Source: Pocillopora damicornis
Lineage: Eukaryota
NCBI RefSeq assembly: GCF_003704095.1
Contig: NW_020843495.1
Coordinates: 62,001 to 126,000 of the forward strand
DNA length: 64,000 nt
Reading direction: 5' to 3'
Every line of letters begins with the position of its first letter. Within the stretch, counting starts at the first letter, position 1. The translations under genes and the position numbers were made by a program. Positions 19,355 to 34,364 of the stretch are shown here, piece after piece. The notes under the pieces are model-generated. The model saw nothing but the letters and a program-made list of their open reading frames with translations, was not told where the DNA came from and ran no database searches.

Positions 19355-19590
19355 AGGGGGGTAGTTTCTAAAGAAATTGTGGTGCTGCGTCGGTGGGAGA
19401 ATATAGCAAGGTATTTGATATTATCAACCGAGTTGGTAACGGAAACTGGCCACCGTTAAGAGTCTGAAAGCTGACGTTTTGACTGATAGCCCTTCATTAG
19501 AGCGAATGACGAAGGACTAACGCTTGAAACGTCAGCTTTCAAACTCCTATACGCTATCAACTCGGTTGATAATACCAAATTACCTTGTAA
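19355..19590. mobile_element. Penelope-like element remnant: inverted repeat with degenerate hammerhead cores
   Basis: Inverted arms attatcaaccgagttg / caactcggttgataat and aaagctgacgttt / aaacgtcagcttt; plus-strand (C)TGACGA-aggactaacgctt-GAAA-cg-TC-agc. Confidence 0.7.
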
Positions 19591-20711
19591 CATTTAAACC
19601 ACTCAATTTGCGAGGAAATCTTCATGTTTATTTGATCAGTTTTCCTTGTATCTTTTTTTCCACAGCCGCTGTTTTGTTTATATAATCGATTTAGTTTTAT
19701 TTTTCTCCACCTCGTTTCTGCCAAGTCGTTCAAAATATTTTGTGAGGTAACAATAGAATTTGACATACAAAAAGAATCCTTCTATGGAATAATTAACATC
19801 CAGAGAGAATTAATTTATTCTCCTGTCAGAACTTGATTGTCAATTGACAGAGGTCAATAGTTTACGACAGCACTTACACATATCTCAGAGCTCCCCTTCC
19901 CATCTAGCAGCCAAGGTTGTGCACGAGAAAACTGGCATTTGTGAAAGAAAAAACTGGCGTCCATGCATCCATTCGTAACTTAACGAATGCAGACATACAA
20001 TATGACTGCACTTACAAATGTTACTTTATCTTATTTTCTCGATTGCTGATTTTTCCCAGTGTAACAATAAAGGGTTAAAAAAAAAAGGACATGGTTCCGG
20101 TGTAATAAGGAAAAACATGTGCATTAGAACGTTGGAGTCGTGTCAAAGTCGTCAACAGTGTCGCGCGCTCAAGTCACATTCGCGAGAGCCGTATAACAGT
20201 CGCGAGCCGTGTCTCGTTCAACAGTCGCTTGACGATATTTACATCCGATACCGTAAGAGATATATCTGAGGAAAGAAAAGAAAAACAGACTCACTTCCAA
20301 TCAGTATTTTTTGGATACTTTTACTAAACAAAGTACTAATATAATTTAGATCAAAAGAATGTTCGGACCCGCCACGTATTTCCTGTTTCTAAAATATATT
20401 TACTGGCTACAAGGAATAGGTTATTGACTCAGATCTAATAACTTGAAAGTATTTGTCCTAGTATTGTCTATTTACTATTTTAATACAACTTCTTACTTGG
20501 ACTCTGTATTTGATATCTATATCATATGAATAGCTAGACAAAACACTATGCGCCTATTTCTTTGAAGCCCTGCCTATACAACCGAAAACTACTGTAGTCT
20601 TTCTTCCAACTGAAAACCCCTACTACGATTCTTAATATTTTTTTTTTTCAATTGCCGTCTTCCCAAGCTTCCTTTGTGGGAACGATAGGGTTAATTTGTT
20701 GTACAATCACC

Positions 20712-20717
20712 TTTATT
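20712..20717 (-). terminator. Candidate polyadenylation signal for SNX27
   Basis: AATAAA on the minus strand ~500 nt after the stop at 21215. Confidence 0.45.
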
Positions 20718-21214
20718 TACACGCATCCAAGAATGGAAATTGTGTAGTACTCAAAATCAAATACAACATTATAAATGTGTTGAACTCTCCTAAGTGGATA
20801 AGGCGTGAATCCTAATGGTTCCTCTAACGAAAGATTCAAAGGTCAGAAACAGTGCAATCTTTCTTTAGGCATGAAAAATCATCGATGTCTTCTATCTGCC
20901 AAAGATGCGAGACTTTCAGACTTCATTCAAGGTTGCGGTTGTAGTTGATTACTAAGTTTTGTGTCAGAGTTAAAACGGTAAATCTTGAAGCAAATCGACT
21001 TTACACAGGCCTCTATCAGTAGAAGTTAGCCGTGAGTAAAAAAGTATTGTCTATCAGGAGCTGACAGTTCATATGCCTCGAAGAAGCCTCAATAATGATC
21101 ACTAGTAGCTTTTAAGGCACAAATTGAAGCTCTGTTGGCAACACACGTGCTTCTAGTGAAGTAAAAAATCCAGCGAGGAAAGCCAATCTCAGACCATTTC
21201 TACTTGTACTTAAT

Positions 21215-24200
21215 TCACAAGTCCTCATCTTCGATGGCGGAATTAAAATTCTTTGAGGACGTCCTTGGCATTGAAAATTTATTATTCTTGGCAGAGTATG
21301 GTTTGGTATGACTCTTCTGGTTGGAAGCGGCAGAGATCTCCTAAAGAAAGAGAGCATATAAGTTTACTGCTCAGCGGTCCTCCTATTCTCATGGTATTGG
21401 AACGTACAGTTCTCGACATACTCTGGCTGGAAACTCCAGAACATTAACTTGTTGAAATACATCGTGTAAATGGCAAGTCAGTACACAGGCGGCCCAAGCT
21501 CCAGCTGTGAGATGATCATCTTGCGAAATAAGAGTCATGGCGAAATTATAAGAGTTTGTATGGGAATATTTTACGACCGCTCTTAGGAGTAAAAATACAG
21601 TCAAATTCTCAATAAAAATACCTCACCTTACTTCCACAGTGCATCGCTTGCTATCTGACCGCTTACTATGTTGAAAAGAACCCATTTTGGCGAGTTATCC
21701 ATTTCTAGGTTTACTGCGTAAATAAGAAAAGCTTCTCTTGCGTACGTAGTAAACAGAAATTGATAACTCGCTAAAATGGGTTCCTTTCAACATAGTAAGC
21801 GCTCAGATAGCAAGCGATGTACTGTGGAAGTAAGGTGAGATATTTTTATTGAGAATTTGACTGTATTTTTTATTCCTAAGAGCGGTCGTAAATATTCCCA
21901 TACAAACTCTTACAATTTCGCCATGACTCTTATTTCGCAAGATGATCATCTCACAGCTGGAGCTTGGGCCGCCTGTGGTCAGTACAAGCAAAAATGACAA
22001 ACAAAATCGGGCAAGGAAATGCGAATATTTGGGTCACCGCTAATCAGTCTAAATTCAGATGTCTTAGAGCGTTTTGTCTTGTTTGTATTCTTTCACGTGA
22101 AACCTCTTACGGAAGAGTATCCATATGTAGGTTCAGTGGAGGAGGACTGGGTAAGAGGCACGACGCTCTCTATAAAAGTAATACGAAGACACTGTCTGGA
22201 ACAGTCATGGCGCTAATGTAAGACTTGAGTTCCGTAAAAGGGAGGAGATTTCACAAGATAAGGTAAAGAAAATAAAATCATGTTCAATTTATGATACTAC
22301 TTGCGACGAAAGCGAGTTACGTTGAAAACAAAGCAAAACAAAACAAACACATCCACGCTCGGTGCTTCAATGACCACACTGAAGTCGATCGAAGCTATTG
22401 AAGTATGTATAATGTACGCGTGACACAGTCACAGCTTGAGTAGATATCGTTCACCTACCGTTTCCTGTGAATCTGTAATGTCCCCAGTTGCTTCTTCTGA
22501 TGGCATGTTTGCCTTCATTCCGCCTGGATACAATGGTAAAATACCATCCTGTAACAAACCAGTTGGCAATTAGACACATCGTTTGTATCGTACCCCACAG
22601 TCGTGGATGTTAAAGCTCTCCACATTTCATTAAAAAAGTGAACACAGCAATCAATTGTAAGGTGGGGCTCGGGTGCTGTTATTAAGAAAATCAGTTACAA
22701 ATCGAACAAAATCTTGTTTGGCAAAACCTCTCCAAAAGAAAACAACAACTTACGACTGCCGTTAATTAACCCTTTAACTTCCATGAGTGACCAAGACTGA
22801 ATTTCTCCTTTCAATATCAAACAAGTGATGCCGGAGAATAAGAGAAAAACTTAAATTAGGGAATTACTGGTTGATCCAATACCAAATTCTCAGAATTAAC
22901 ATCATGAGACGAATCGCATGGCAGGTAGTAAAGAAAATCACTCATTAGATCTTAGGAGTGAATGGTTTAAGAGAGTGATCAGTAAGCCCATGCCTAACTA
23001 CAAAAAAACATTTCTCGCGGGAAAACTAAACTTTGTAACTAAGCTTTCTAGTTAAGAATACTATGGCCTTGCGTATCGAGACTTTTCGATGAAAAAACAA
23101 CTTCGCTAACTTTGTGGGTCACAAGCCTGTTGAGACCAGATGGAAGCATTTCAGTTTCTTGCAAACCTATCGACTTAAAGTCCAGTCGATTTCAGAAATA
23201 TAAAGTTGTGTATAAAGTTCCCCATTCTGAGGTAACCTTGTTATTCATTTCGATCTCAGCCATGACTCTGTCAACGCACGCATTCATATAAACATACTGC
23301 AAAAAAAAGACGAAAAAAACATTACGAAAAGAGCCCTGGCCAACAAATGTAACATGAAAAACAAGGTAAGGCCGGTGCACAGTCCAATTTCTCACTGTTC
23401 CCCACCATGACCCTCATACACTCGACCACACGCACTAGGGACGATATTTTACCCAGTCATTCAGACAGTCACCATTCATGCCAACCCTATCTATGGTGAC
23501 ATCGATTTCAGATAACCTTGGCCTTTAATATTTTCCCAATGACCACACGCTCTTGACATGTTGTAAAGCGACCTCTTCTCAATTAAATCACAACGTCTAT
23601 TTCTTAATTAGTGCCGAGACGATGAGGTTCTCTCACCAAGAAAATGACGAAACGGGCTGATTTCGCATTCTTTGTTTGTTAAGATAATTTCATGGTTTTA
23701 TAACCATTGAACTTCTCATCGAGTCTTTTTTCATAACGTTCTCAGCGCCACAATTCCGCAAGTCTCGGCGGCCGTCGCGATCGCTCACTCTGCTAGGAAA
23801 TATTATTTAGTTGGCCGGTCATTCATTAACGAATGGAAAAAGCACATAAAATATCTACTTACATATGTGGAATATACTTTAACCCATTTTGGCTTTTTAT
23901 CCCCCTTTTTGTACTCAAAACAAAATGCCATTGCTTCTCTATCAGCCTCCCATTGTGTCAGCTCCTCCCAGTTAAATGTGTGCTCCTGCTCCTGTTGAAA
24001 CAAAGAAGCCGGCCAACTCACTCGCCATTTTAATAATGATAACAAAATAAGTGGGATTTAGCAGAGGGAGTTCCACGAGGTGGCTCTTCTTGTCCGCTGT
24101 TTCTAGGTAGAATTGGACCCGGAGAAAAAACCCTCGGAGCAAGGACGAGAATTAACAACAAAACTCAACCCACATGTGACACCAGGTCCAGGAATTGAAC

Positions 24201-27200
24201 CCAGGCTAAAGAGGTAGGAGGCGAACGGTCTCTCCACTAAGCCATCCTTGTTCCCTCCCATTTCAAAATATTTGTTGCTACGACTTAGAAATCTCTTAAA
24301 TATTGCAGATCGTGACGTCAAGAAAATTGCAATAATAGGAAAAAAAAACGCTTCAAAAAAAATTAGGTGATGTATTCTGTCCCTCATATTGTTTTTGCAG
24401 TTTACAAATGCCACAAAAACTACAGGCATCAGAGGGTCTCAATAGGGTGATGGCTTTTACGGCTACCGGTTGAAACGCTAGCCATTTTACGGCTAATGGT
24501 TAATATCATTGCATTGTTGTCACCAGAAATTTTTTTAAACGGTGAACTAAATTTTTTGCCTCTTTTACAGTTATCGGTTAACCTCATCAAGACCCTCATC
24601 GCAGAAAATGGGTAAGACACTGGCATGTATGTGGATTGAGTCAACATTTGTGAATGAAAAATAGGACTATACTGACCTCTTTTTCACCCTCGGAGGAACA
24701 CGCTTGTAGTTGAAAACAGTTTAAACCGATAGAAACGATCACATGACCAGTTCTTCTCGCATCGCAACCACAGTGAGGAAAAACAACAGTTGCATATCCA
24801 TCCAACGTCCTTGCAACATCAAGATACTGCAAACATTGAATGAAAAAACCGCATGCTTTAAAAGGGATGAGTTTTTACTGTTTTTCGTGAGGTGTCGTGC
24901 CAATCATCTGTTTCTAAACTGACATCACTACAAAGACAAAGACAAAGACCACTCAATCCCCTTCTCCTACCCCCTACCTCCTATTTCACAGGACATGACT
25001 GACAGTGTGGCCATTGAAGAGGAGTCCCGGAGATGAGAAACATTTTGGTCTTGTTCTCACCTGATTCCAATTACATTTTTGGCGCCACTGTAACATGTCA
25101 TTAACTTTGCCTTAATTTCAAAAATAGGTCAGATTTTTCTTAACAGAGATTTCTCGTTTAAACTGTTTGCCATGACTGGATAATGCTCCATACAAATTAT
25201 ACAAAGAGATGGTGTATGCAGCGAGCATTTTCGTGCTGGTCTAAGTTAGTAACGGATTCGCAAACAAAATAAGCTAGGTTAACACATTGAATTCATTTTC
25301 TTCATCGATTCAACTCTCTCAGTGCCATTTGATTTGCACAAAATCTCGTAACAGCGGACGGTTTAATTAAGAAAGAGTTGTTAAAAACGGAACTGTGCAT
25401 TAAAAAGAACAAAGCACTCCACTGCAGGAAATCTTAAATGATCGGATCCAAATGAGTGAGCCATGTTTTGAACAAGCTCTGGAAGAACATTGCGAACCAA
25501 CTGAGTCAAATACTTCAGCCTGTGGCTGAATAGAACAAAGGCATACTTTACAACACAGCACATGTTTGTTCGGCAGAGTGCTCTATGCAAAAATCAATAC
25601 ACCAGGGAATCTCCTACCTCTTTCTTTTTATTTGCTGCCTGCAGGTCTTTAAGTTTTTGCAGGTTTTTTCCAGGGGACAATTTTCGTCTTCTCAAGTCAC
25701 TAACTGCCTGCGTGTGTTTTAAAATAACAACATAACTGTTAGAAAATATACGAACACTAAATAAGTTATTTATGAAATCATTTTTGCAGCGCTACAAAAA
25801 TCTCTTACTTTGGGATTAACGTTTGACAAATCATCACTAAAAAAGTACCAGTATGAGCGGACACTGGCACTCCTTTACATTATTTTCAATGATAAAAATT
25901 CAGTCTTGCGAATGAAAAACATTGCAGGTCAAGGGTTGAACTTCGATTCAAAAATGTAGCTTAATTTGCAATAAAGTTTGACCCTTTACTGCCCAACACG
26001 CAAACTGTTCAAAGAACAACATGGTTTCTCAAAAAGCTCATCACATATCATTCTCCTACAGTGTGGCTGGAGACTATGGTTCAATAGCTCTGAGCAATAA
26101 ACTATAACAGTTATAAACACATGCCAGTTTATTGACAAAAAGATCTGAGACTTAAAATAAGCAGCTAATGGTCTGGTTCAGTCCAAAACAACTGTGTACA
26201 AAGGACATAACAGAGAAAAAGGGGAAAAATCTTTGTAAACATATCTTTCTCCTGCTAAGGAGAACGGATACCTGAGTATATAGGAGGTTAACCGCACTCT
26301 CATCATTGTTCATCTGCACTTCCTGTTCAATTACACAACAAATACATAAAACACTTTCCTTTCAAATCCTCAGTACCACATTTCATCAAAGACTTTGAAT
26401 TCTACACACTCTAACCAACAGATGTCCTTGCATTTGTATGCAACCTTTATATAAATCTACCATCCCCTTCACCATTAAAGTGGATGTAATGTATGGGTTG
26501 GGTGAGCCACCCTACTTCAGCCAAAGAACAAATTAAAGGCAAAAACACGAAGTCACTTTTTGTTTTCAACTTAGTGGGGACAATTGAAAAACAAACATAG
26601 ATGGTAAATGCCCTCTCTTATGGACAAAAGCAAAAAGAAAACAAAAGTGAAATTGATATTTTCTTTCGCCCATTTGGAAACTGGTGGGAACTAAAGCACA
26701 AAGATTATTAAGACCACTCCTTTCCAGTACATCACTTTAAATTGGCTGAGGTGCTCTTTCATGAAACATTGAGTACTCTGTCTACTCTATATCTTGTGTA
26801 GAAACAGATCCAACCTGAATGACCAGGCTCAACATTAGGTAGAACATTAGCATACAAACCCTTGCTAGGGTAAATATCCACTTTCGAAAAGCAAGACAGG
26901 TTGTAGATGATGCAGTATAACTCTTGATATATAAGTTGTGGGGGAACTCATTCTGTTCAAGTTTGCGTTCTAATATGAGGGGAAAAAAAGCCAATAGAGA
27001 AACACCTTGAGCAAAGAGATTTTGGTGATAATAAAATTGAAAAAGTTAAGAGTTGAAAGTAAAATGTTATGCCTCTAACCCTTTAAAGCAAAATGAAAAT
27101 TACATACTCAGACAAGCCAAGCTAAGCTATTCAAGGAATAACTAGTACAAAGCTATACTAAGCAGTGGTGAAAACCTAGTAGTTTTAAGGTCAACTCAGG

Positions 27201-30200
27201 ACTGGTGGTGATCTGAAATATAAACAACAGCTTAGAGTCACATATCACTGAGACTCACACTACCAATCAGAAGAGCTAGTCTAACATATTCACTAAAACC
27301 CGACCTTCATGTTAATGGACAAAAGCATAACATGCTTCACTTACCAAAACCATCATCACCAATCTCAAAGAGTGCAAAGTTTGAGATGCTGTCTTGGTCC
27401 AAATTTAGCTTTTCTGTCATGGCCTTCCATAAACATAAAATCAAGTGAGACAATTTCTAGTTAACTATCAACTCTCATTATTAAAGCTTTTGTCTCAATC
27501 AGATTGTTGCTAGGAACCACAAATAACCAAAACTATTAATTTCTCCTTCATAATCAACATAGGGTACACCACATCCCTCTTTTTTGCATGTGATGTCACA
27601 CTTTATGTCAACAGAAATCTGTTTATACTATTGTTGCTCACAATAATAACTTTAATTTACTTTGGGTGGATGAGCTACCTTTCACCCTAGACCCTTTGCT
27701 TCCAGTTAATAGTAAATCTGTGGTTTTCAAAAACTTTAAAAAAAATACAACTTGGTGACTGAACCAAATGCACTAAACACAAGAGTTTGTGATCAGATAA
27801 ATATTTTGCCACAGGATTTGCATAAATTGAAGCTAGAAACGTTTTAACACAGTAAGGTTTTTGCTGTCCTTCAGTTCTCTGCTGCCCTATACATGATGCA
27901 TTAGGGGAATTAAGCCTAACCCCACAATGACATGGAGGATGTGGCAAAACAGAAGATCTCATGTGCAGAACAACAGCTCAGTATGTTTGTTTTAAAACTG
28001 TACATTTCTTTGCCATCCTCTGCAGAACAACTATGTGAAATCACAAATATTAAGTGGCCTGAGAATGGAAACCCAGAAGAAAATTATTCATGTTTCCATC
28101 TGGAACTAAATGCTGCTCGTATACATTAAGTTGAAGTGTAGTGCTGTTAGAGACCGTAAACACATCAAGCCATTCGCAAAATTCTTTCTAAAAACTTTAA
28201 TTCATTTTGTAATAGAAGTCTTCCTTACTATTGACAGAAACCGGAGAAAAAAGAATCAAGAAACATTACATGCATATTTGTGTAGATCACAGTGCATGAA
28301 TGTTTTTCACTGCTCACCTGATATACTTGAACTGTTTTGTGACATTTCAGAACAGTCACAGTCGTAATTGAATCATCTGGTAAAAATACTCTCAACTCAA
28401 CTTTCATTGAACCATCTTCCTCTTCTTTCTCTTGCTGAAATACAATGTTGGAAGAGAAAATGAAGAGAATCTCCTTGTTCTCATTCTCAACAATGTTGTG
28501 TTCACTTTAAGAAATTAGAGAAACTAAAGCTCATTCAATCCTGTCTAGTTATTTAAAAAGGTGAAGTGTGCAGGAGAGCCATGTAGCTTGTGAAAACCAT
28601 CAGATCTCCATTTCCATAACAGACACAAAATGAAGCAAGTAAGAGTATTGCTACTCCTCTATGGGGGATGCTGGTCCATCAAAGGTTACCCCCACTCACC
28701 CCACCTACCAGCCCTTTGTCCAGTTTCCTGGCAGTTTGTTGGTACCCACTTATACTCCCAGGTGAAGAGGGTCACTGTTAGAATACAATGCCTTGTCCAA
28801 GAACACAACACAACCACCGGAGTCCATTATGCATAAAAGAAGGAAAAAGTCTTTATACACTACAGAGACTTCTGCATCTAAATTTTGATGGCTTCAACAA
28901 TTCACCAGTAATTTGATTCAGATGAGGAAAATAATCTCCAAATGCTTTTAACTACTCTAATGCCCTTATATTCTAATCTAAAAACACTCAAAGACCCAAC
29001 TCAGGTTTAAACCTAGATGTAATTGGTTTAATAAAACTTAAAAATGCATCCACCTCCCTAATCTTGGACAAAAATTTGCACCAGAGACTGAGATAATACA
29101 CAATTTTTGTCTCACCATCTATGAACTATTATTAAATATCTTTCAAAATTTTAACATATCAATCTCAAGGCAAAAAAACAAACTTTATGTTCTTCAAAAA
29201 TACACAGACAAATACCATTTTACAGCATTACTTCAAGTATACTTGTAAATTCAATAAAACAAATTACTCTTATTCAAAGCCATCTCTGGGGAAAATTTAT
29301 TTTGAAACACACAAAATACCTGGAGTTGGTTTTCTGAAGACTTGAGAAAGTCTACCATGATGTCTGACTCTCCAATAACTTTCACTGAATTAACTGTTAA
29401 GAAAGTATAAAAAATTACTTGTCAATTCACACTTACTTACATCTAGTTGGAAAAAGTTCTTAAAATTGAAAATTTTTAGGGCAGTTGAATTTTTGTTTCT
29501 AATAGCCCTAATAATAATAATGACAATGACAGTCTACATCAAATGAAAATTAAAAGGGTTTAAATTTTTTGGTTCTCATCAATAAGTTTTTGTGTACGCC
29601 CTCCTCTTTACTAGGCAGTGGTAATCAATGAGACCCCTCCCTTCCAGCCAGGGCCTCATTACAGCATATGTAGTGATTAGGAGAGTTGTGGAAACATTTT
29701 GATACAAGCTGATAATGAAACATTTCTTTATCTTACTACAAGAAAAAATACTCTTGTTTGTAGTTAACTTCAAATTTTAGGGGTGCTTACAGAAATACCT
29801 GTCATATAGTTTGCTTTCGAAGAAACCTCAGATAACTAATATGATCATTTATGAAAAACATATGAACAATTTCTCAATGCTTAACACACTAACTAGGTAA
29901 TAATAGTTTATTTTAATTAATAAAATTGTAAGAAGAGAGAAGATTGATTTCAAAAGAAGAGTCAGGCCAGGTATCTGAATTACACACACAATTTGATTGG
30001 TATTTACTAAAAAATATATTGGAGAACAGACAACTAGACCACGTCATCACTGACAATTTTTTTTTTCTTATTTAGAATATAAAACAAATAGACTCTATAT
30101 TTCCATGGGTCTGTTAATAGATCAGAGAAGATATTAAAATGTGGTAGGAACATAAGTAACACACTTGGCTGCACCTTGTGTGTAGTGTGTAGAAGAAATG

Positions 30201-33200
30201 CAAAATTGCTTTCAGCATTGGTGTAAATATTATAATTTCCGTGGTCTGATATTCCATGGCATCTACCTTCCTCTTCACAAGACAGTCTGAGAGTACCGGT
30301 AAATCATTTCTTTACTATAACAAGAGTTATGAACTTATTGAACACATTTTCATTGAAAAACTACTGTCTAACCTTGATCAAAGTAAGATTCCAAAGCTTT
30401 TCTACGAGCTTCTATTTGTTGATCAGATAAGTGAAATGGCCACTTTCCAGGAAACTTAGGAAACTGGAAATCTCTAAACTCCTTCTTAAGCTGATAGCAA
30501 AGACAAAAGAAGCCTCAGATTACTTAAAGGTTAAAAATAATGTAATCAGTGATAATTAATTTGAAGATAAATTATCCCTGTATGTCAATGTGACTCTGTA
30601 TATCATTACCATGATGGCAAAAATAGATGTAGTTCAACACTTGGGCCAAGTGTCCCATCTGGCCAAAGCTTATTTTGGTTTCTGTGGCATGATGCCAGTA
30701 TTAGTATTGTTGCTACTCCCCCTTGATGCGAAGCTAGTCCATTACATGTTACCTTCCTGACAGTGCCACCAAACCCATTTATACTCCTGTTGTTTGAAGT
30801 CCATCCAAGCATCAAATTGTACACAAAAAAAATTATACTGAATTTTTCTCCTTAAGGTTCAGATTTCACACTAACCCTGAGTTATCTTAACCCACCTTTG
30901 AACAACAGTGCCCTGGGTGATAAAAAGGCACCATATGCCAGCCAGGTCTCAAACCTGGACAACTAGATGGCAAGTCCAACGTGCTAAAGTTGAAACTAGG
31001 ATAACTTTAAATTTGAAAATTTGAAAATGAAAGTATGATAGCTTACTGACTTTAAGTGAGGCTCTACATATCTATTCCAAGGAAACACAACTCTGCTGTA
31101 TTCAGCAAACAATTCAGTTATAAAATCTTAACCTCTTTACCTGGTTGTGCAAATTTGAAAATTCTTTGTATCTTCTGGAACAAATATGCTTGTCTCCATA
31201 GTAGATATTGTACACCTATAAAAAGGATATTCTTTCACCAAAAATAGATAAATATACCCTAGTTACAGCTTTTTATCAATTTATTTTTTTAAAGTAGTTG
31301 ACTGATTGCATTTCATTTGTAAATAACTTCCTAAAGAATACTGGTATATCAACATATTACTGACATATATCCTACTCTCACTAATGTGAGGTTAACAAAG
31401 GGGCAGTCCTGATCCCAATTTATGCACAAGTATTAGAAAAATTTACGTATCACATATATATGTAAAAGGAAACACTCCAAATCTCTCTTCTTGTCTACAA
31501 AGTTTTCAGGGAAATCTTGAGGTTTTTGAAATGAAAGAAAAATTTATGGTTCACACATATTTTGGGAGGCAAATCAAGCATTGTACTGGTTGATATACTA
31601 CTACATGTGTCACATACTAATTTAGGCTTTAAGTCATGCATCACATGTTAACCCTTTCCCTGACCCTTTGTCTCCCTCAAATACAAGTACACCACTTCAG
31701 GAGCAGAAACATCCAATCATGTTGCATAAATATTTATGCAGCTGGTTATTTGGTGAATTAAATTAGGCTTTCTTGGCAGGTTGACTGCCTTCATCCTATA
31801 AGCGCAAGATGACATCATGATAATCTTTAGACAAGAGATCTCATACTCTGCACAGAACTGGAACTGTACCATGCAAAAAAAAACCACACACACGCACTTT
31901 AGCATTTCTTACCACATATGTTTCACCATTGCTAACAACTTGTCTTGTCTCAGGTATTGATAATGGTACAGCTCTCTTGTCTGTATAATCATAATATTCT
32001 CCTCCAGATGAACTCTCACTCTCAAGTTTCTCAGCTTCATGTGAACTCACAGATATCACAACTAAAGTCAGTTTATCTCCGCCTTTCTTGATCAGGTTCA
32101 CTACATGTTTGTGAGTGGCACCTTCCACATTTTCACCATTCCTGTTGACCACATAATTTTCACTTTATAAATATGACAGAATTTTTCCTTACACTAACCA
32201 TTTACCCTTACCATTAATACCTATATTCTCCATCCTGTTCTCTTTGCATTTCCTCTGATATTAAAAAGGAGAATTTGTTTGACGATCAGGAGCTTCTTAA
32301 CTTGATGATTGTTTCCTTTATTCATGTGACCATACTCTTTGATTGAAGGGTGAAACGGCAAGGAGAAACTAGAAGCCAGTCACTCAAAAGGGTTAAAGAG
32401 TCCACCTAACAATAATTACTGTGAAACAGTGTCAACTTTTGCCTCAAAAAGAGATCTTTTACCCCTTTATCCCCTGTCAATAAATATTGAAAAAACTTCT
32501 TATATAAAAACACTGCTTACACCTGTGGTTTGCAAAACACCTTGTTTACCATGTCATAGAAAGGAAAATTTAAAGTAGTCTTATATTAAACTGTTGATTT
32601 CCAACACTTAGATAGCAAATTAGCCAAACATATATAATTTTATGATTTTACCCTGCAGTAGTTTTTATCAAATCTCCAATTTACTCCTTTAATTTCTGGA
32701 CTATACTACTCAGTCCATTATTTTTCACTCAAAGTGTACAGCTTTTAATAATTGCCCAGTGAAACTTTGAGGATTGTAATTTTCAACACAGTGAACTTTG
32801 AACAAATGGAATCTACATCTTATCTCCAACAGACAAAATCCAACATGAGCTAAGTGTGACTTCACATGTGACTACAGTGTTTATCTTACTTAAATATTAA
32901 TAACACTGTCATAAACCATTCAGGTATCTTTTGACAAAGGTTTCAATAACTTTTTCTATGAGTGGTTGCTAACAGTACAACAGTCCAGAAAGGACTGTAA
33001 GGAAAAACCCAAACACAAGACCTCTCTCACAAGCTAAACAGATGGCAGTTAAAAGTCTTATAGACAGTGGTAGACCACTTTTAACCCTTTAATTCCCACG
33101 AGTGACCAGGACATAATTTTTCCTTACACTACCAATACAATATCAAGCAAACAAGTGATGAGGATAAAGGAAAATATCAATCAAGAGATCATTGGTTGAT

Positions 33201-34364
33201 TCAATACCAAATTCTCCAAACTTACACCAGAAAAATTGTATGGCTATCAGTGAGAAAAATTACTAAATGAGATCTTAAGAGTGAAAGGGTTGACCAGTTC
33301 TTATGGAAGCTCCTATTTTGATAGAAACAAATCAAGCTAGATCAAATAGAAAAGACAAAATGGATTGAGATCCATCAACAGAAAGACTAACAATTTGATC
33401 AACAATGGCTGTTCAAAAAATAAAAACCTATCATCCTTTGAGTCAGCGTGGGCAAAAACGATTGTACACCATTATATGGGTTTCATAAGCAAAGTACCAT
33501 GTGGAATAAAGAAATAAGTTGCTTAATTAGCGAGGTAGTTTCTAGTTCAAAACAAAAAATCCCTCAATAAGCTCAAGATGTTTTCTTCATCCTGATGTAA
33601 TGACTTCAAATCTGAATATTCTTGTCAAATACATATCAAGTTAGAGTGGTACCATTGCATTCTAAAATTGAGACTTCTCATTCAAGAGGAAAGAATCAAA
33701 TAAAATTAAAGGTTAAAAGTTAAAAAATCACTTGTTAAATTAAACCATGATTTAAAGTGGAAACAACTACATGAAACTATTTCTCAACTGGAAAAATCTC
33801 AAAAAACAACCGGAGGTTAAAGAATGTTGGCAAAGATTACCACTTTCACCATAGCTCCATCTTAAGTCAAAAATCTGATTACTCCCTTCGAAAAAGCGAA
33901 AAGAAAAATTTCGGCTGATGAATCACAAGAGCAAGTATTGTAAATAGTCTTCAATTGGTAACAGCTGGCAGCGATATTTATCAATAATCACAGCAAAGAA
34001 GTACGTTTATCTACATTAACACCACGCAGGACCACTCTTGTAACTATCCGTCAGCCCCCGTTAAACAATCTGTGCATAATCATAATAGTCATAATATACA
34101 AAGTAAGTCATGTTTGTTTACGTACACTTCAAGGATTCGATCACCAATCCTAACCCCTCCGTTATGAGCGGGGCCACTCTCCAATACGGCGCTTACATGC
34201 TGCAACGGTGCATACAGTTCTCCATTTATTGACTTCAGTTGCCCCCCTTCTGATACCTGGCCACGGACGTTAAATCCAAATCCATTTTCTCCTCGAAACA
34301 ATTCAATTAACCTGGGTCCGTAAGGATCAGCTTGACGAGCGTCAGCTTCTTCATCGTCCGCCAT
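21215..34364 (-). CDS. SNX27: Sorting nexin-27 (PDZ-PX-FERM-like), ~578 aa (~599 aa with an optional exon)
   Basis: Exons 34364-34126, 32141-31913, 31215-31141, 30490-30373, 29393-29320, 28434-28318, 27423-27345, 26969-26860, 26322-26272, 25707-25618, 24826-24677, 23991-23863, 23296-23237, 22548-22459 (or -22455 plus 22169-22111), 21340-21215. Diagnostic [92 protein letters not shown]. Confidence 0.95.
21484..21977. mobile_element. 494 bp near-perfect foldback MITE, probably P-superfamily
   Basis: Whole element is an inverted repeat (CACAGGCGGCCCAAGCT...AGCTTGGGCCGCCTGTG, centre ~21730) flanked by 7 bp direct repeat gtcagta (21477-21483, 21978-21984). Confidence 0.9.
22766..22970. mobile_element. 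piggyBac-like MITE, family A copy 2
   Basis: ttaaCCCTTT...ttaa; same internal sequence as 777-984. Confidence 0.8.
24050..24256 (-). mobile_element. tRNA-derived SINE
   Basis: Minus-strand A box TGGCTTAGTGG (24244-24234) and B box GGTTCAATTCC (24201-24191) followed by a non-tRNA body. Confidence 0.75.
24432..24597. mobile_element. Short MITE-like element
   Basis: Terminal inverted repeats gagggtct...agaccctc; internal repeated tttacggcta units. Confidence 0.55.
28620..28815. repeat. SINE-like interspersed repeat, related to 30640-30790
   Basis: Shared blocks ttgctactcc, gct.gtccat, gttacc, accca.ttatactcc. Confidence 0.55.
30640..30987. repeat. SINE-like repeat apparently interrupted by a second short element (~30790-30913)
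   Basis: Similarity to 28620-28815 stops at atactcct and resumes near ggtga ~30916. Confidence 0.45.
32196..32400. mobile_element. piggyBac-like MITE, family B copy 1
   Basis: Shares atattctcc...catttcct...aaggagaatttgttt.ac.atca...aaggagaa.tag with 39618-39827. Confidence 0.7.
33081..33293. mobile_element. piggyBac-like MITE, family A copy 3
   Basis: ttaaCCCTTT...AAAGGGttga; matches 777-984. Confidence 0.8.

Follow-up and report, generated by a model that had tools for sequence, protein, structure and literature searches.

Does the sorting nexin 27 (SNX27) of a coral carry, besides the PDZ domain that serves Retromer, a C-terminal tail of the kind that SNX17 offers to Retriever? In models based on mammals, SNX27-Retromer and SNX17-Retriever run in parallel, each pathway being served by an adaptor of its own. 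A literature search found no paper reporting a Retriever-type tail on SNX27. I analyzed a window of 64,000 nucleotides from the genome of Pocillopora damicornis, in which an SNX27 gene had been proposed to end in such a tail. The reading favored here, to which I give a probability of roughly 0.6 from sequence comparison, is that coral SNX27 is an adaptor of Retromer and a predicted adaptor of Retriever, with a tail ancestral to SNX27.

The terminal exon is part of the SNX27 gene

As listed in Table 1, the SNX27 gene of Pocillopora has 15 exons on the minus strand, the last coding one at 21215-21340. Exon 1 supplies the ATG at which translation starts (34364-34362) and encodes the PDZ domain's N-terminal half with the beta3-beta4 hairpin. 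The acceptor ctctctttctttag precedes the terminal exon, whose minus-strand translation is exactly the one initially claimed: 41 codons with the end AIEDEDL, then the stop codon TGA (21217-21215). A database protein (P0153; P. damicornis pdam_00014060, 578 aa, UniRef name Sorting nexin-27) was mapped on the window from 34364 to 21218, and this translation equals its final 41 residues.

The proposed splicing of the terminal exon to SNX27 was confirmed, as the joint 22459/21340 is present in Logan contigs from each of four RNA runs that come from separate studies (X1, X5, X13, and X14). The upstream joints 23237/22548, 23863/23296, and 24677/23991 were likewise found in all four runs, and the four introns at the 3′ end are all GT-AG introns in phase 0. 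Poly(A) RNA libraries connect the terminal exon with the FERM exons through four GT-AG joints in a row, so it is neither a part of another gene nor a retrocopy. In one run the cut at exon 23863-23991 was placed one base off, and an RNA contig with a loose end at 24828 continues there in sequence from the exon upstream of the FERM F3 exon 24677-24826.

In the initial annotation, the small exons 23237-23296 and 22459-22548, which lie between the FERM F3 exon and the terminal one, had been overlooked. A segment with very high RNA depth, 22652-22848, is a dispersed repeat and not a gene. The contigs of the 3′ untranslated region reach approximately 20378-20432 in three runs and 19724 in one, and such contigs cannot fix the true end. 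AATAAA matches in the window were not above chance, and none adjoined the points where the contigs stop. An Rfam search over 21000-25000 returned only one hairpin, with a score below the gathering threshold.

Table 1. Exons and 3′ untranslated region of the SNX27 gene, in window coordinates
Feature	Position	Strand	Basis
SNX27 exon 1	34125-34364	-	ORF; tblastn with P0153 residues 1-80, 100% identical; 3′ boundary approximate
SNX27 exon 2, C-terminal half of PDZ	31904-32152	-	Extent of tblastn match; boundaries approximate
Eight exons, PX and FERM F1/F2	25522-31215	-	tblastn with P0153; boundaries unrefined
PX and FERM F1/F2 matches, first four	~31132-31215, 30374-30511, 29320-29403, 28303-28464	-	tblastn
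PX and FERM F1/F2 matches, last four	~27340-27447, 26848-27021, 26239-26334, 25522-25755	-	tblastn
FERM F3 exon (...SSEGEKE)	24677-24826	-	Acceptor cag 24829-24827; joint 24677/23991 in four RNA runs
FERM F3 exon (...VKVYSTY)	23863-23991	-	RNA joints on both sides; GT-AG, phase 0
F3 C-terminal helix exon	23237-23296	-	Joints 23863/23296 and 23237/22548; aligned to human FNYMHECFERVFCELKWR
First tail exon	22459-22548	-	Joints 23237/22548 and 22459/21340 in four RNA runs; pLDDT <50
Terminal coding exon, with NNKF box and RICT-type motif as last six residues	21215-21340	-	Translation, RNA joint, P0153
SNX27 3′ untranslated region	20378-21214	-	RNA contigs that run on from the terminal exon

A canonical SNX27 body with the Retromer-binding hairpin

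By sequence, the gene in the window is the Pocillopora orthologue of SNX27, with a canonical PDZ-PX-FERM body. The best PDB matches of the protein are the PDZ, PX, and FERM domains of SNX27 (E 1e-36 to 1e-75). Residues 16-111 match SNX27 PDZ chains (3qgl, 4p2a, and others) with E 8e-37 (range 1e-36 to 1e-38), and the PX domain matches that of SNX27 (4has) with E 9.5e-41. For the FERM domain (residues 253-505), the match to SNX27 (8ttt, E 1.1e-75) is far stronger than that to SNX17 (4tkn, E 2.4e-16). The domain order is the same as in vertebrate SNX27 (4P2A, 8TTT, 4HAS), at a whole-protein identity of about 48%.

The hairpin between beta3 and beta4, which binds VPS26, is invariant in an alignment of 21 SNX27 sequences from many phyla. 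The coral hairpin equals the vertebrate one apart from a single K/R change (GGQL[KR]...). Thus, the intact SNX27 PDZ domain with its hairpin, noted earlier in exon 1, stands, and the hairpin would engage VPS26 of Retromer.

The tail and its motif

The coral protein differs from vertebrate SNX27 in having an extra tail of 70 residues with the end IEDEDL. Vertebrate SNX27 isoforms end in ...KWRKEEY, ...NIFQMARSQQRDVAT, or ...GWRHLGGEIATS, and none of them, lampreys included, has an acidic-Leu end; these ends agree with the earlier statement that vertebrate SNX27 lacks the tail. In the coral, I-E-D-E-D-L is directly followed by TGA, so that the Leu is the true C-terminus. The six residues fit both the pattern [ILV]-x-[DEQN]-x-x-L and the strict form [ILF]-x-a-a-a-L (a, acidic). 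From typical amino acid frequencies, a strict end of the form [ILF]-x-[DE]3-L is estimated to arise by chance at about 3.5e-5 per protein. In an AlphaFold2 model built with a 43-sequence alignment, residues 513-578 have a pLDDT <50 nearly throughout (513-574 and 576-578) and lack secondary structure. The motif thus closes an unstructured tail, as the definition of the RICT motif (short for Retriever-interacting C-terminal tail) demands (PMC11589680).

The terminal Leu is essential in SNX17, SNX31, and LRMDA (PMC11589680, PMC11339278, PMC12491506). The footprint of Retriever on the tail comprises 12 residues, and the residues at -9 and -10, with Phe462 in SNX17, take part in the binding (PMC11589680). 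It was also pointed out by Singla et al. that a well-formed RICT motif is no guarantee of binding, as the preceding sequence can block it, for example in HYOU1 (PMC11589680). Among the corals and sea anemones, Phe occupies position -10 in Pocillopora, Acropora, Montipora, Nematostella, and Actinia, and is absent from Oculina and one further coral found in Logan contigs. The aromatic residue at -10 rather than -9 in Pocillopora, and its absence from these two corals, may count against the Retriever-binding reading.

SNX17 and SNX31, the adaptors of Retriever/Commander, share with coral SNX27 the PX-FERM family, a disordered tail, and an end of the form [IL]-x-acidic-acidic-acidic-Leu (IGDEDL in human SNX17, IGDDDL in coral SNX17, and IEDEDL in coral SNX27). 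SNX17 differs in that it lacks a PDZ domain and is not a Retromer adaptor. The same six-residue end is found on the unstructured tails of LRMDA, PATE1, and weaker binders, whose folds are unrelated (Singla et al. 2024; Butkovic et al. 2025). Since unrelated folded parts carry the same motif, the RICT motif is portable. Binding to the Retriever pocket has been shown for the LRMDA/PATE1 group, none of which is a Retromer adaptor, while the coral SNX27 tail is a predicted binder.

Distribution of the tail among animals

Is the tail a peculiarity of this coral? A protein search with the F3 exon yielded chiefly genomic ORFs of one exon and fragments from vertebrates, whose tails were unreadable; a partial Nematostella sequence from this search (P0016) was used as the seed of the informative searches. 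No contigs encoding the spliced cnidarian-like fragment P0013 were on record. The motif is kept in SNX27 of all six named anthozoan genera seen, with the ends AIEDDDL in Nematostella and Actinia, AIDDEDL in Oculina, TIEDEDL in Montipora, and NIDDEDL in Acropora. The check for conservation in other anthozoans was thus positive among those seen, and the motif exists outside Anthozoa as well.

SNX27 sequences with the motif were found in five phyla, namely Cnidaria, Echinodermata, Hemichordata, Cephalochordata, and Nemertea. The ends are KIFDTLNEDDL in sea stars, DVFEDINDGDL in hemichordates, KVFETINDPDL in amphioxus, and SIGDGDL and NIGDLDL in nemerteans. In sea stars, hemichordates, and amphioxus, Phe is located at -9; this Phe and the acidic residue at -8 are common to the deuterostome SNX27 tails and SNX17 (human NFAFEGIGDEDL; this coral's NKVFEGIGDDDL). 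The acidic-Leu tail was not found in any vertebrate, arthropod, mollusc, or annelid SNX27 seen (isoforms included where checked), and the SNX27 model of the crinoid Anneissia lacks the tail. The survey covered animals, with Anthozoa as the non-bilaterians and with vertebrates and amphioxus as the chordates.

These sequences bear on whether the resemblance to SNX17 is a coincidence, the motif being a neutral or convergent acidic C-terminus. The motif is just six residues long, disordered tails evolve fast, and SNX27 of several lineages is devoid of it. Sea anemones and stony corals are two deeply separated anthozoan orders. Between them the end has been kept while the remaining tail has drifted: in eight anthozoan SNX27 tails, the pairwise identity is 77% in the last 7 alignment columns versus 34% elsewhere in the tail. 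In addition, the end recurs in four bilaterian phyla as part of a longer pattern that resembles SNX17, F-[ED]-x-[IL]-N-[DE]-x-D-L, and the chance expectation estimated above for the strict motif is very low. I therefore consider coincidence very improbable. As the motif is short, acidic-Leu ends could nevertheless have evolved more than once.

The SNX27 tail is conserved and probably ancestral to SNX27, because it recurs in Cnidaria, Echinodermata, Hemichordata, Cephalochordata, and Nemertea; its putative function is deduced solely from the motif and this conservation. The distribution over the phyla fits the earlier suggestion that the tail is ancestral and that vertebrates lost it; on this reading arthropods, molluscs, and annelids lost it too. 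The tail may even have been present when the SNX17/27/31 family arose.

Other roles for the tail

The end of the tail may be read in another way, as a PDZ-binding motif of type III, recruiting a PDLIM-type actin-associated protein or another PDZ protein instead of Retriever. By its sequence, the end E-D-L satisfies the type III form [DE]-x-hydrophobic, EDEDL placing Glu at PDZ position -2, and a metazoan distribution is common to SNX17 and the PDLIM proteins (Healy et al.). In SNX17, the PDLIM contacts are the last eight residues, EGIGDEDL (Healy et al.). However, the same residues of SNX17 bind both Retriever and PDLIM, and therefore PDLIM binding is compatible with Retriever binding. Moreover, the Ile/Leu six residues from the end and the Phe at -9 or -10, kept in the SNX27 tails of the five phyla, match the 12-residue Retriever footprint, whereas the PDLIM contacts cover eight residues only. 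A PDZ ligand that works in place of a Retriever ligand is thus unlikely.

It is also conceivable that the tail acts within the molecule without any outside coat, the acidic-Leu end or an NxxF box folding onto the protein's own PDZ or FERM domain and regulating the binding of cargo or Retromer. SNX17 is autoinhibited by an NFAF box in the F3 groove of its own FERM domain (PMC11339278). A box of the form N-[NQ]-[KR]-F is kept in scleractinian SNX27 tails, and an aromatic box lies at the aligned place in hemichordates (RNIFGRL) and vertebrates (KNIFQM). On the other hand, the N-x-x-F box is absent from the SNX27 tails of sea anemones. The PDZ domain of SNX27 belongs to class I, which accommodates a Glu at position -2 poorly. 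Healy et al. give reasons why Glu at this position does not suit a conventional PDZ groove.

The initial annotation had likened the NNKF box of Pocillopora to the autoinhibitory NxxF of SNX17, and this found no support. In SNX17 the box abuts the motif (NFAFEG-IGDEDL) and docks in the protein's own FERM domain, while the coral NNKF box is located about 25 residues upstream of the motif. The AlphaFold2 model leaves residues 513-578 disordered, with no strand, no confident segment, and nothing docked, although a monomer model is a weak negative. In contrast, models of apo SNX17 always dock NFAF (PMC11339278). SNX17-type autoinhibition by NNKF is thus unsupported, and I regard a purely intramolecular role of the tail as quite improbable.

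Partner machinery and a proposed dual-adaptor model

Retriever binding by SNX27 would call for a Retriever in the same genome. A VPS26C exon was found (G000:C853), whose only PDB match is VPS26C (8p0x_P, E 8.8e-16), as well as CCDC22 (contig C4207). A separate SNX17 gene on contig C1462 ends in NKVFEGIGDDDL; the check for such a gene was thus positive, and it has an IGDDDL tail of its own. With the VPS26C exon, CCDC22, and an SNX17 with a canonical tail, Retriever/Commander appears to be present in the coral. VPS26 and VPS35 are also encoded; the Pfam Vps35 model, searched against the coral genome, matched VPS35 on contig C2576 only and gave no VPS35L match.

According to the dual-adaptor reading, the terminal Leu and the acidic residues of the tail would insert into the pocket of Retriever where VPS35L meets VPS26C, which is reported to be highly conserved (PMC11339278). 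In human, residues R248, W280, and K283 form this pocket. Coral SNX27 may then engage Retromer by its PDZ domain and Retriever/Commander by its tail, simultaneously or in turn, and supply the two recycling routes with PDZ-ligand cargo and cargo of the NPxY type.

A wider proposal is that SNX27 was ancestrally a dual adaptor, of Retromer through the PDZ hairpin and of Retriever/Commander through the tail, and that the mammalian split into SNX27-Retromer and SNX17-Retriever is derived. The split would have arisen when vertebrates lost the tail, a loss that arthropods, molluscs, and annelids would have undergone independently. This proposal is tentative, and I rate it at slightly less than an even chance. 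If it is true, SNX27 of many animals could hand PDZ-ligand cargo to Retriever/Commander or bridge both coats, and the mammalian arrangement would be a secondary simplification. The loss of the tail would be a case in which the loss of a linear motif rewires trafficking. The natural variants I-E-D-E-D-L, I-N-D-G-D-L, L-N-E-D-D-L, and I-G-D-L-D-L help to refine the motif.

Splicing and identity of the tail-bearing SNX27

Directly after the polypyrimidine acceptor ctctctttctttag, the minus-strand terminal exon at 21215-21340 was found to encode a 41-residue frame followed by TGA. Lacking its own start codon, this frame is missing from the ORF listing. Splicing was examined with Logan contigs, which are assembled from RNA runs, placed on positions 19500-25400 of the window. 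They came from four RNA runs of four different studies, covering coral and marine metatranscriptomes and poly(A), oligo-dT, cDNA, and PCR libraries. The joints 22459/21340, 23237/22548, and 24677/23991 (donor/acceptor) are present in all four runs, and the joint 23863/23296 is exact in three runs and shifted by one base in the fourth. The last introns of SNX27 each run from GT to AG on the minus strand, and all junctions are in phase 0. The RNA joints and these introns therefore define the last five coding exons. The initial annotation was right to attach the terminal exon to SNX27 but missed two small exons, that for the F3 helix and the first tail exon. The first of the five starts at 24826, behind an acceptor cag at 24829-24827, while the open frame alone suggests 24835.

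Features of the SNX27 locus and protein, and the SNX17 gene of the same genome
Feature	Position	Strand	Evidence
FERM F3 exon	24677-24826	minus	RNA joints
FERM F3 exon	23863-23991	minus	RNA joints
Exon for F3 C-terminal helix (20 residues)	23237-23296	minus	RNA joints
First tail exon	22459-22548	minus	RNA joints
Terminal exon	21215-21340	minus	RNA joint
3′ untranslated region	terminal exon to ~20378-20432; one run to 19724		contigs, which cannot fix the true end
PDZ	P0153 residues 16-119		best PDB match SNX27, E about 1e-37
PX	P0153 residues 129-239		best PDB match SNX27, E 1e-41
FERM	P0153 residues 253-508		best PDB match SNX27, E 1e-75; SNX17 only 1e-16
Coral SNX17 gene	G000:C1462:53900-61117	+	loci L003, L004

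Exon 1 lies on the minus strand with its ATG at 34364, and the encoded protein begins MADDEE. With a fragment of Nematostella SNX27 as query, the database protein P0153 of Pocillopora damicornis (pdam_00014060, Sorting nexin-27, 578 aa) was retrieved, which maps onto 34364-21218 in 15 pieces and whose final 41 residues are identical to the terminal exon. The window is therefore Pocillopora DNA. The tail-bearing SNX27 model is already public in the annotation. The frame was checked by translating the last four exons joined, and whole-protein analyses were performed on P0153. The VPS26-binding hairpin of the PDZ domain, read as intact from the DNA, is invariant from coral to mammal in the alignment. 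AlphaFold2 with a 43-sequence alignment folded PDZ, PX, and FERM confidently and left residues 513-578 disordered.

A Retriever-type motif and its possible partners

The SNX17 tail docks in a VPS35L pocket at the VPS35L-VPS26C interface, and its terminal Leu470 is essential (PMC11339278, PMC11589680). Singla et al. first described the motif as [ILF]-x-acidic-acidic-acidic-L, and mutagenesis led to the looser [ILV]-x-[DEQN]-x-x-L, named RICT, which is reported as necessary and sufficient in SNX17, SNX31, and LRMDA (PMC11589680). The coral SNX27 end IEDEDL matches both the strict and the relaxed definitions. The same paper cautions that the surroundings of a motif decide whether it binds: residues at -9 and -10 add to binding, and the HYOU1 tail does not bind despite a well-formed motif (PMC11589680). 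From the motif and its conservation, I put the probability that coral SNX27 has a working Retriever-binding tail, besides its Retromer-binding PDZ, at roughly 0.6. The acidic-Leu end may also be bound by a PDLIM-type PDZ protein, alongside Retriever or in its place. The protein models are public, but no description of this SNX27 tail or of its implications turned up in full-text literature that pairs SNX27 with Retriever, RICT, Commander, evolution, or PX-FERM. The tail alignment in Fig. 8a of Singla et al. holds SNX17, SNX31, and LRMDA only (PMC11589680).

Does the coral also have a separate SNX17? A whole-genome search with the FERM F1 family of SNX17/27/31 revealed a second gene on another contig, C1462. 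SNX17 is the sole match of its F3 exon among solved structures (E 7e-11), and its last open frame (L004:2999-3121) ends in NKVFEGIGDDDL and a stop, nearly identical to human NFAFEGIGDEDL. Thus, a canonical SNX17 is also present. The genome has VPS26C (an exon on contig C853, sole PDB match VPS26C, E 8.8e-16), CCDC22 of the CCC complex, and Retromer VPS26 and VPS35.

The tail also carries an N-x-x-F box, NNKF, which had been likened to the autoinhibitory box of SNX17. SNX17-style autoinhibition by this box gets no support: it lies 25 residues from the motif, is absent in sea anemones, and is undocked in the AlphaFold2 model.

Distribution of the motif among animals

Searches and cluster look-up yielded 286 SNX27 homologues of at least 430 aa, whose C-termini were compared. 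A RICT-type end was found in 30 of them, and its distribution is not random. Conservation in other anthozoans was borne out: the protein ends in AIEDDDL in Nematostella and Actinia, AIEDEDL in Pocillopora, AIDDEDL in Oculina, TIEDEDL in Montipora, and NIDDEDL in Acropora. In anthozoan tails, pairwise identity is 77% in the last seven alignment columns versus 34% in the rest. Sea stars (Acanthaster, Patiria, Asterias) end in GKIFDTLNEDDL, hemichordates (Saccoglossus, Glandiceps) in DVFEDINDGDL, amphioxus in KVFETINDPDL (10 of 12 cluster members of at least 430 aa), and the nemerteans Lineus and Tubulanus in SIGDGDL and NIGDLDL. Among the 286 homologues, the motif is absent from vertebrates, lampreys included, as had been proposed for the vertebrate protein, and from insects, crustaceans, one myriapod, chelicerates, about twenty molluscs, and the annelids Capitella and Owenia. 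Since every cluster member was checked for oysters, scallops, mussels, octopus, horseshoe crabs, and lampreys, absence in these six groups is not an artefact of isoform display.

That a motif this short arose by convergence is conceivable. Two features speak against it. Deuterostome SNX27 tails resemble SNX17 beyond the last six residues, with Phe at position -9 and an acidic residue at position -8. Upstream, a second box can be aligned from phylum to phylum: stony corals have N-x-[KR]-F, hemichordates RNIFGRL, and the long vertebrate isoform KNIFQM. This box is a hint of homology of the terminal exon across phyla, with only its end lost in vertebrates. As judged from this distribution, the best reading is that a Retriever-type tail besides a Retromer-binding PDZ would be the ancestral state of SNX27.

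In vertebrate P0198 and P0179, the KNIFQ box aligns with RNIFGRL of hemichordate P0173 and P0178 and with NNKF/NQRF of corals, P0153 among them; after it, the long isoform ends in RSQQRDVAT instead of the acidic-Leu motif. What vertebrates have as a terminal exon may thus be the remnant of the ancestral tail, truncated or diverged. Ambulacrarian SNX27 (sea stars P0350-P0352; hemichordates P0173 and P0178) has 25-45 almost purely acidic residues (E/D) between FERM and the terminal motif, a run absent from cnidarians, amphioxus, and nemerteans.

Motif-less isoforms and intronic repeats

Some motif-bearing species also have a predicted isoform that lacks it, namely X3 of Acropora palmata (P0157) and X4 of Lineus (P0445). 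In the coral, low-depth RNA contigs cross the last donor (22459) unspliced, and a protein read through it would end without the motif. Since motif-less isoforms exist, SNX27 might gain or lose its Retriever-type tail through alternative splicing.

In the intron between the F3-helix exon and the first tail exon, RNA contig depth at 22652-22848 exceeds the flanks by a factor of 10 to 100 and stands at about 51,000 in X1, one RNA run. This segment (core about 22765-22825) is a dispersed repeat: its candidate copies in the genome number at least 520, and the 40 that were scored have in common a core of ~60 bases (90-96% identity). The repeat is probably an element of SINE or MITE type and no gene. 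Within the last intron there is an inverted duplication with arms at 21392-21622 (minus) and 21857-21997 (plus), the same pseudo-ORF in both, and a hairpin at 21682-21779. Rfam mir-4662 matches its centre on either strand with 41 bits, far under the gathering score of 97. By its look, the duplication is a foldback or MITE insertion rather than a microRNA.
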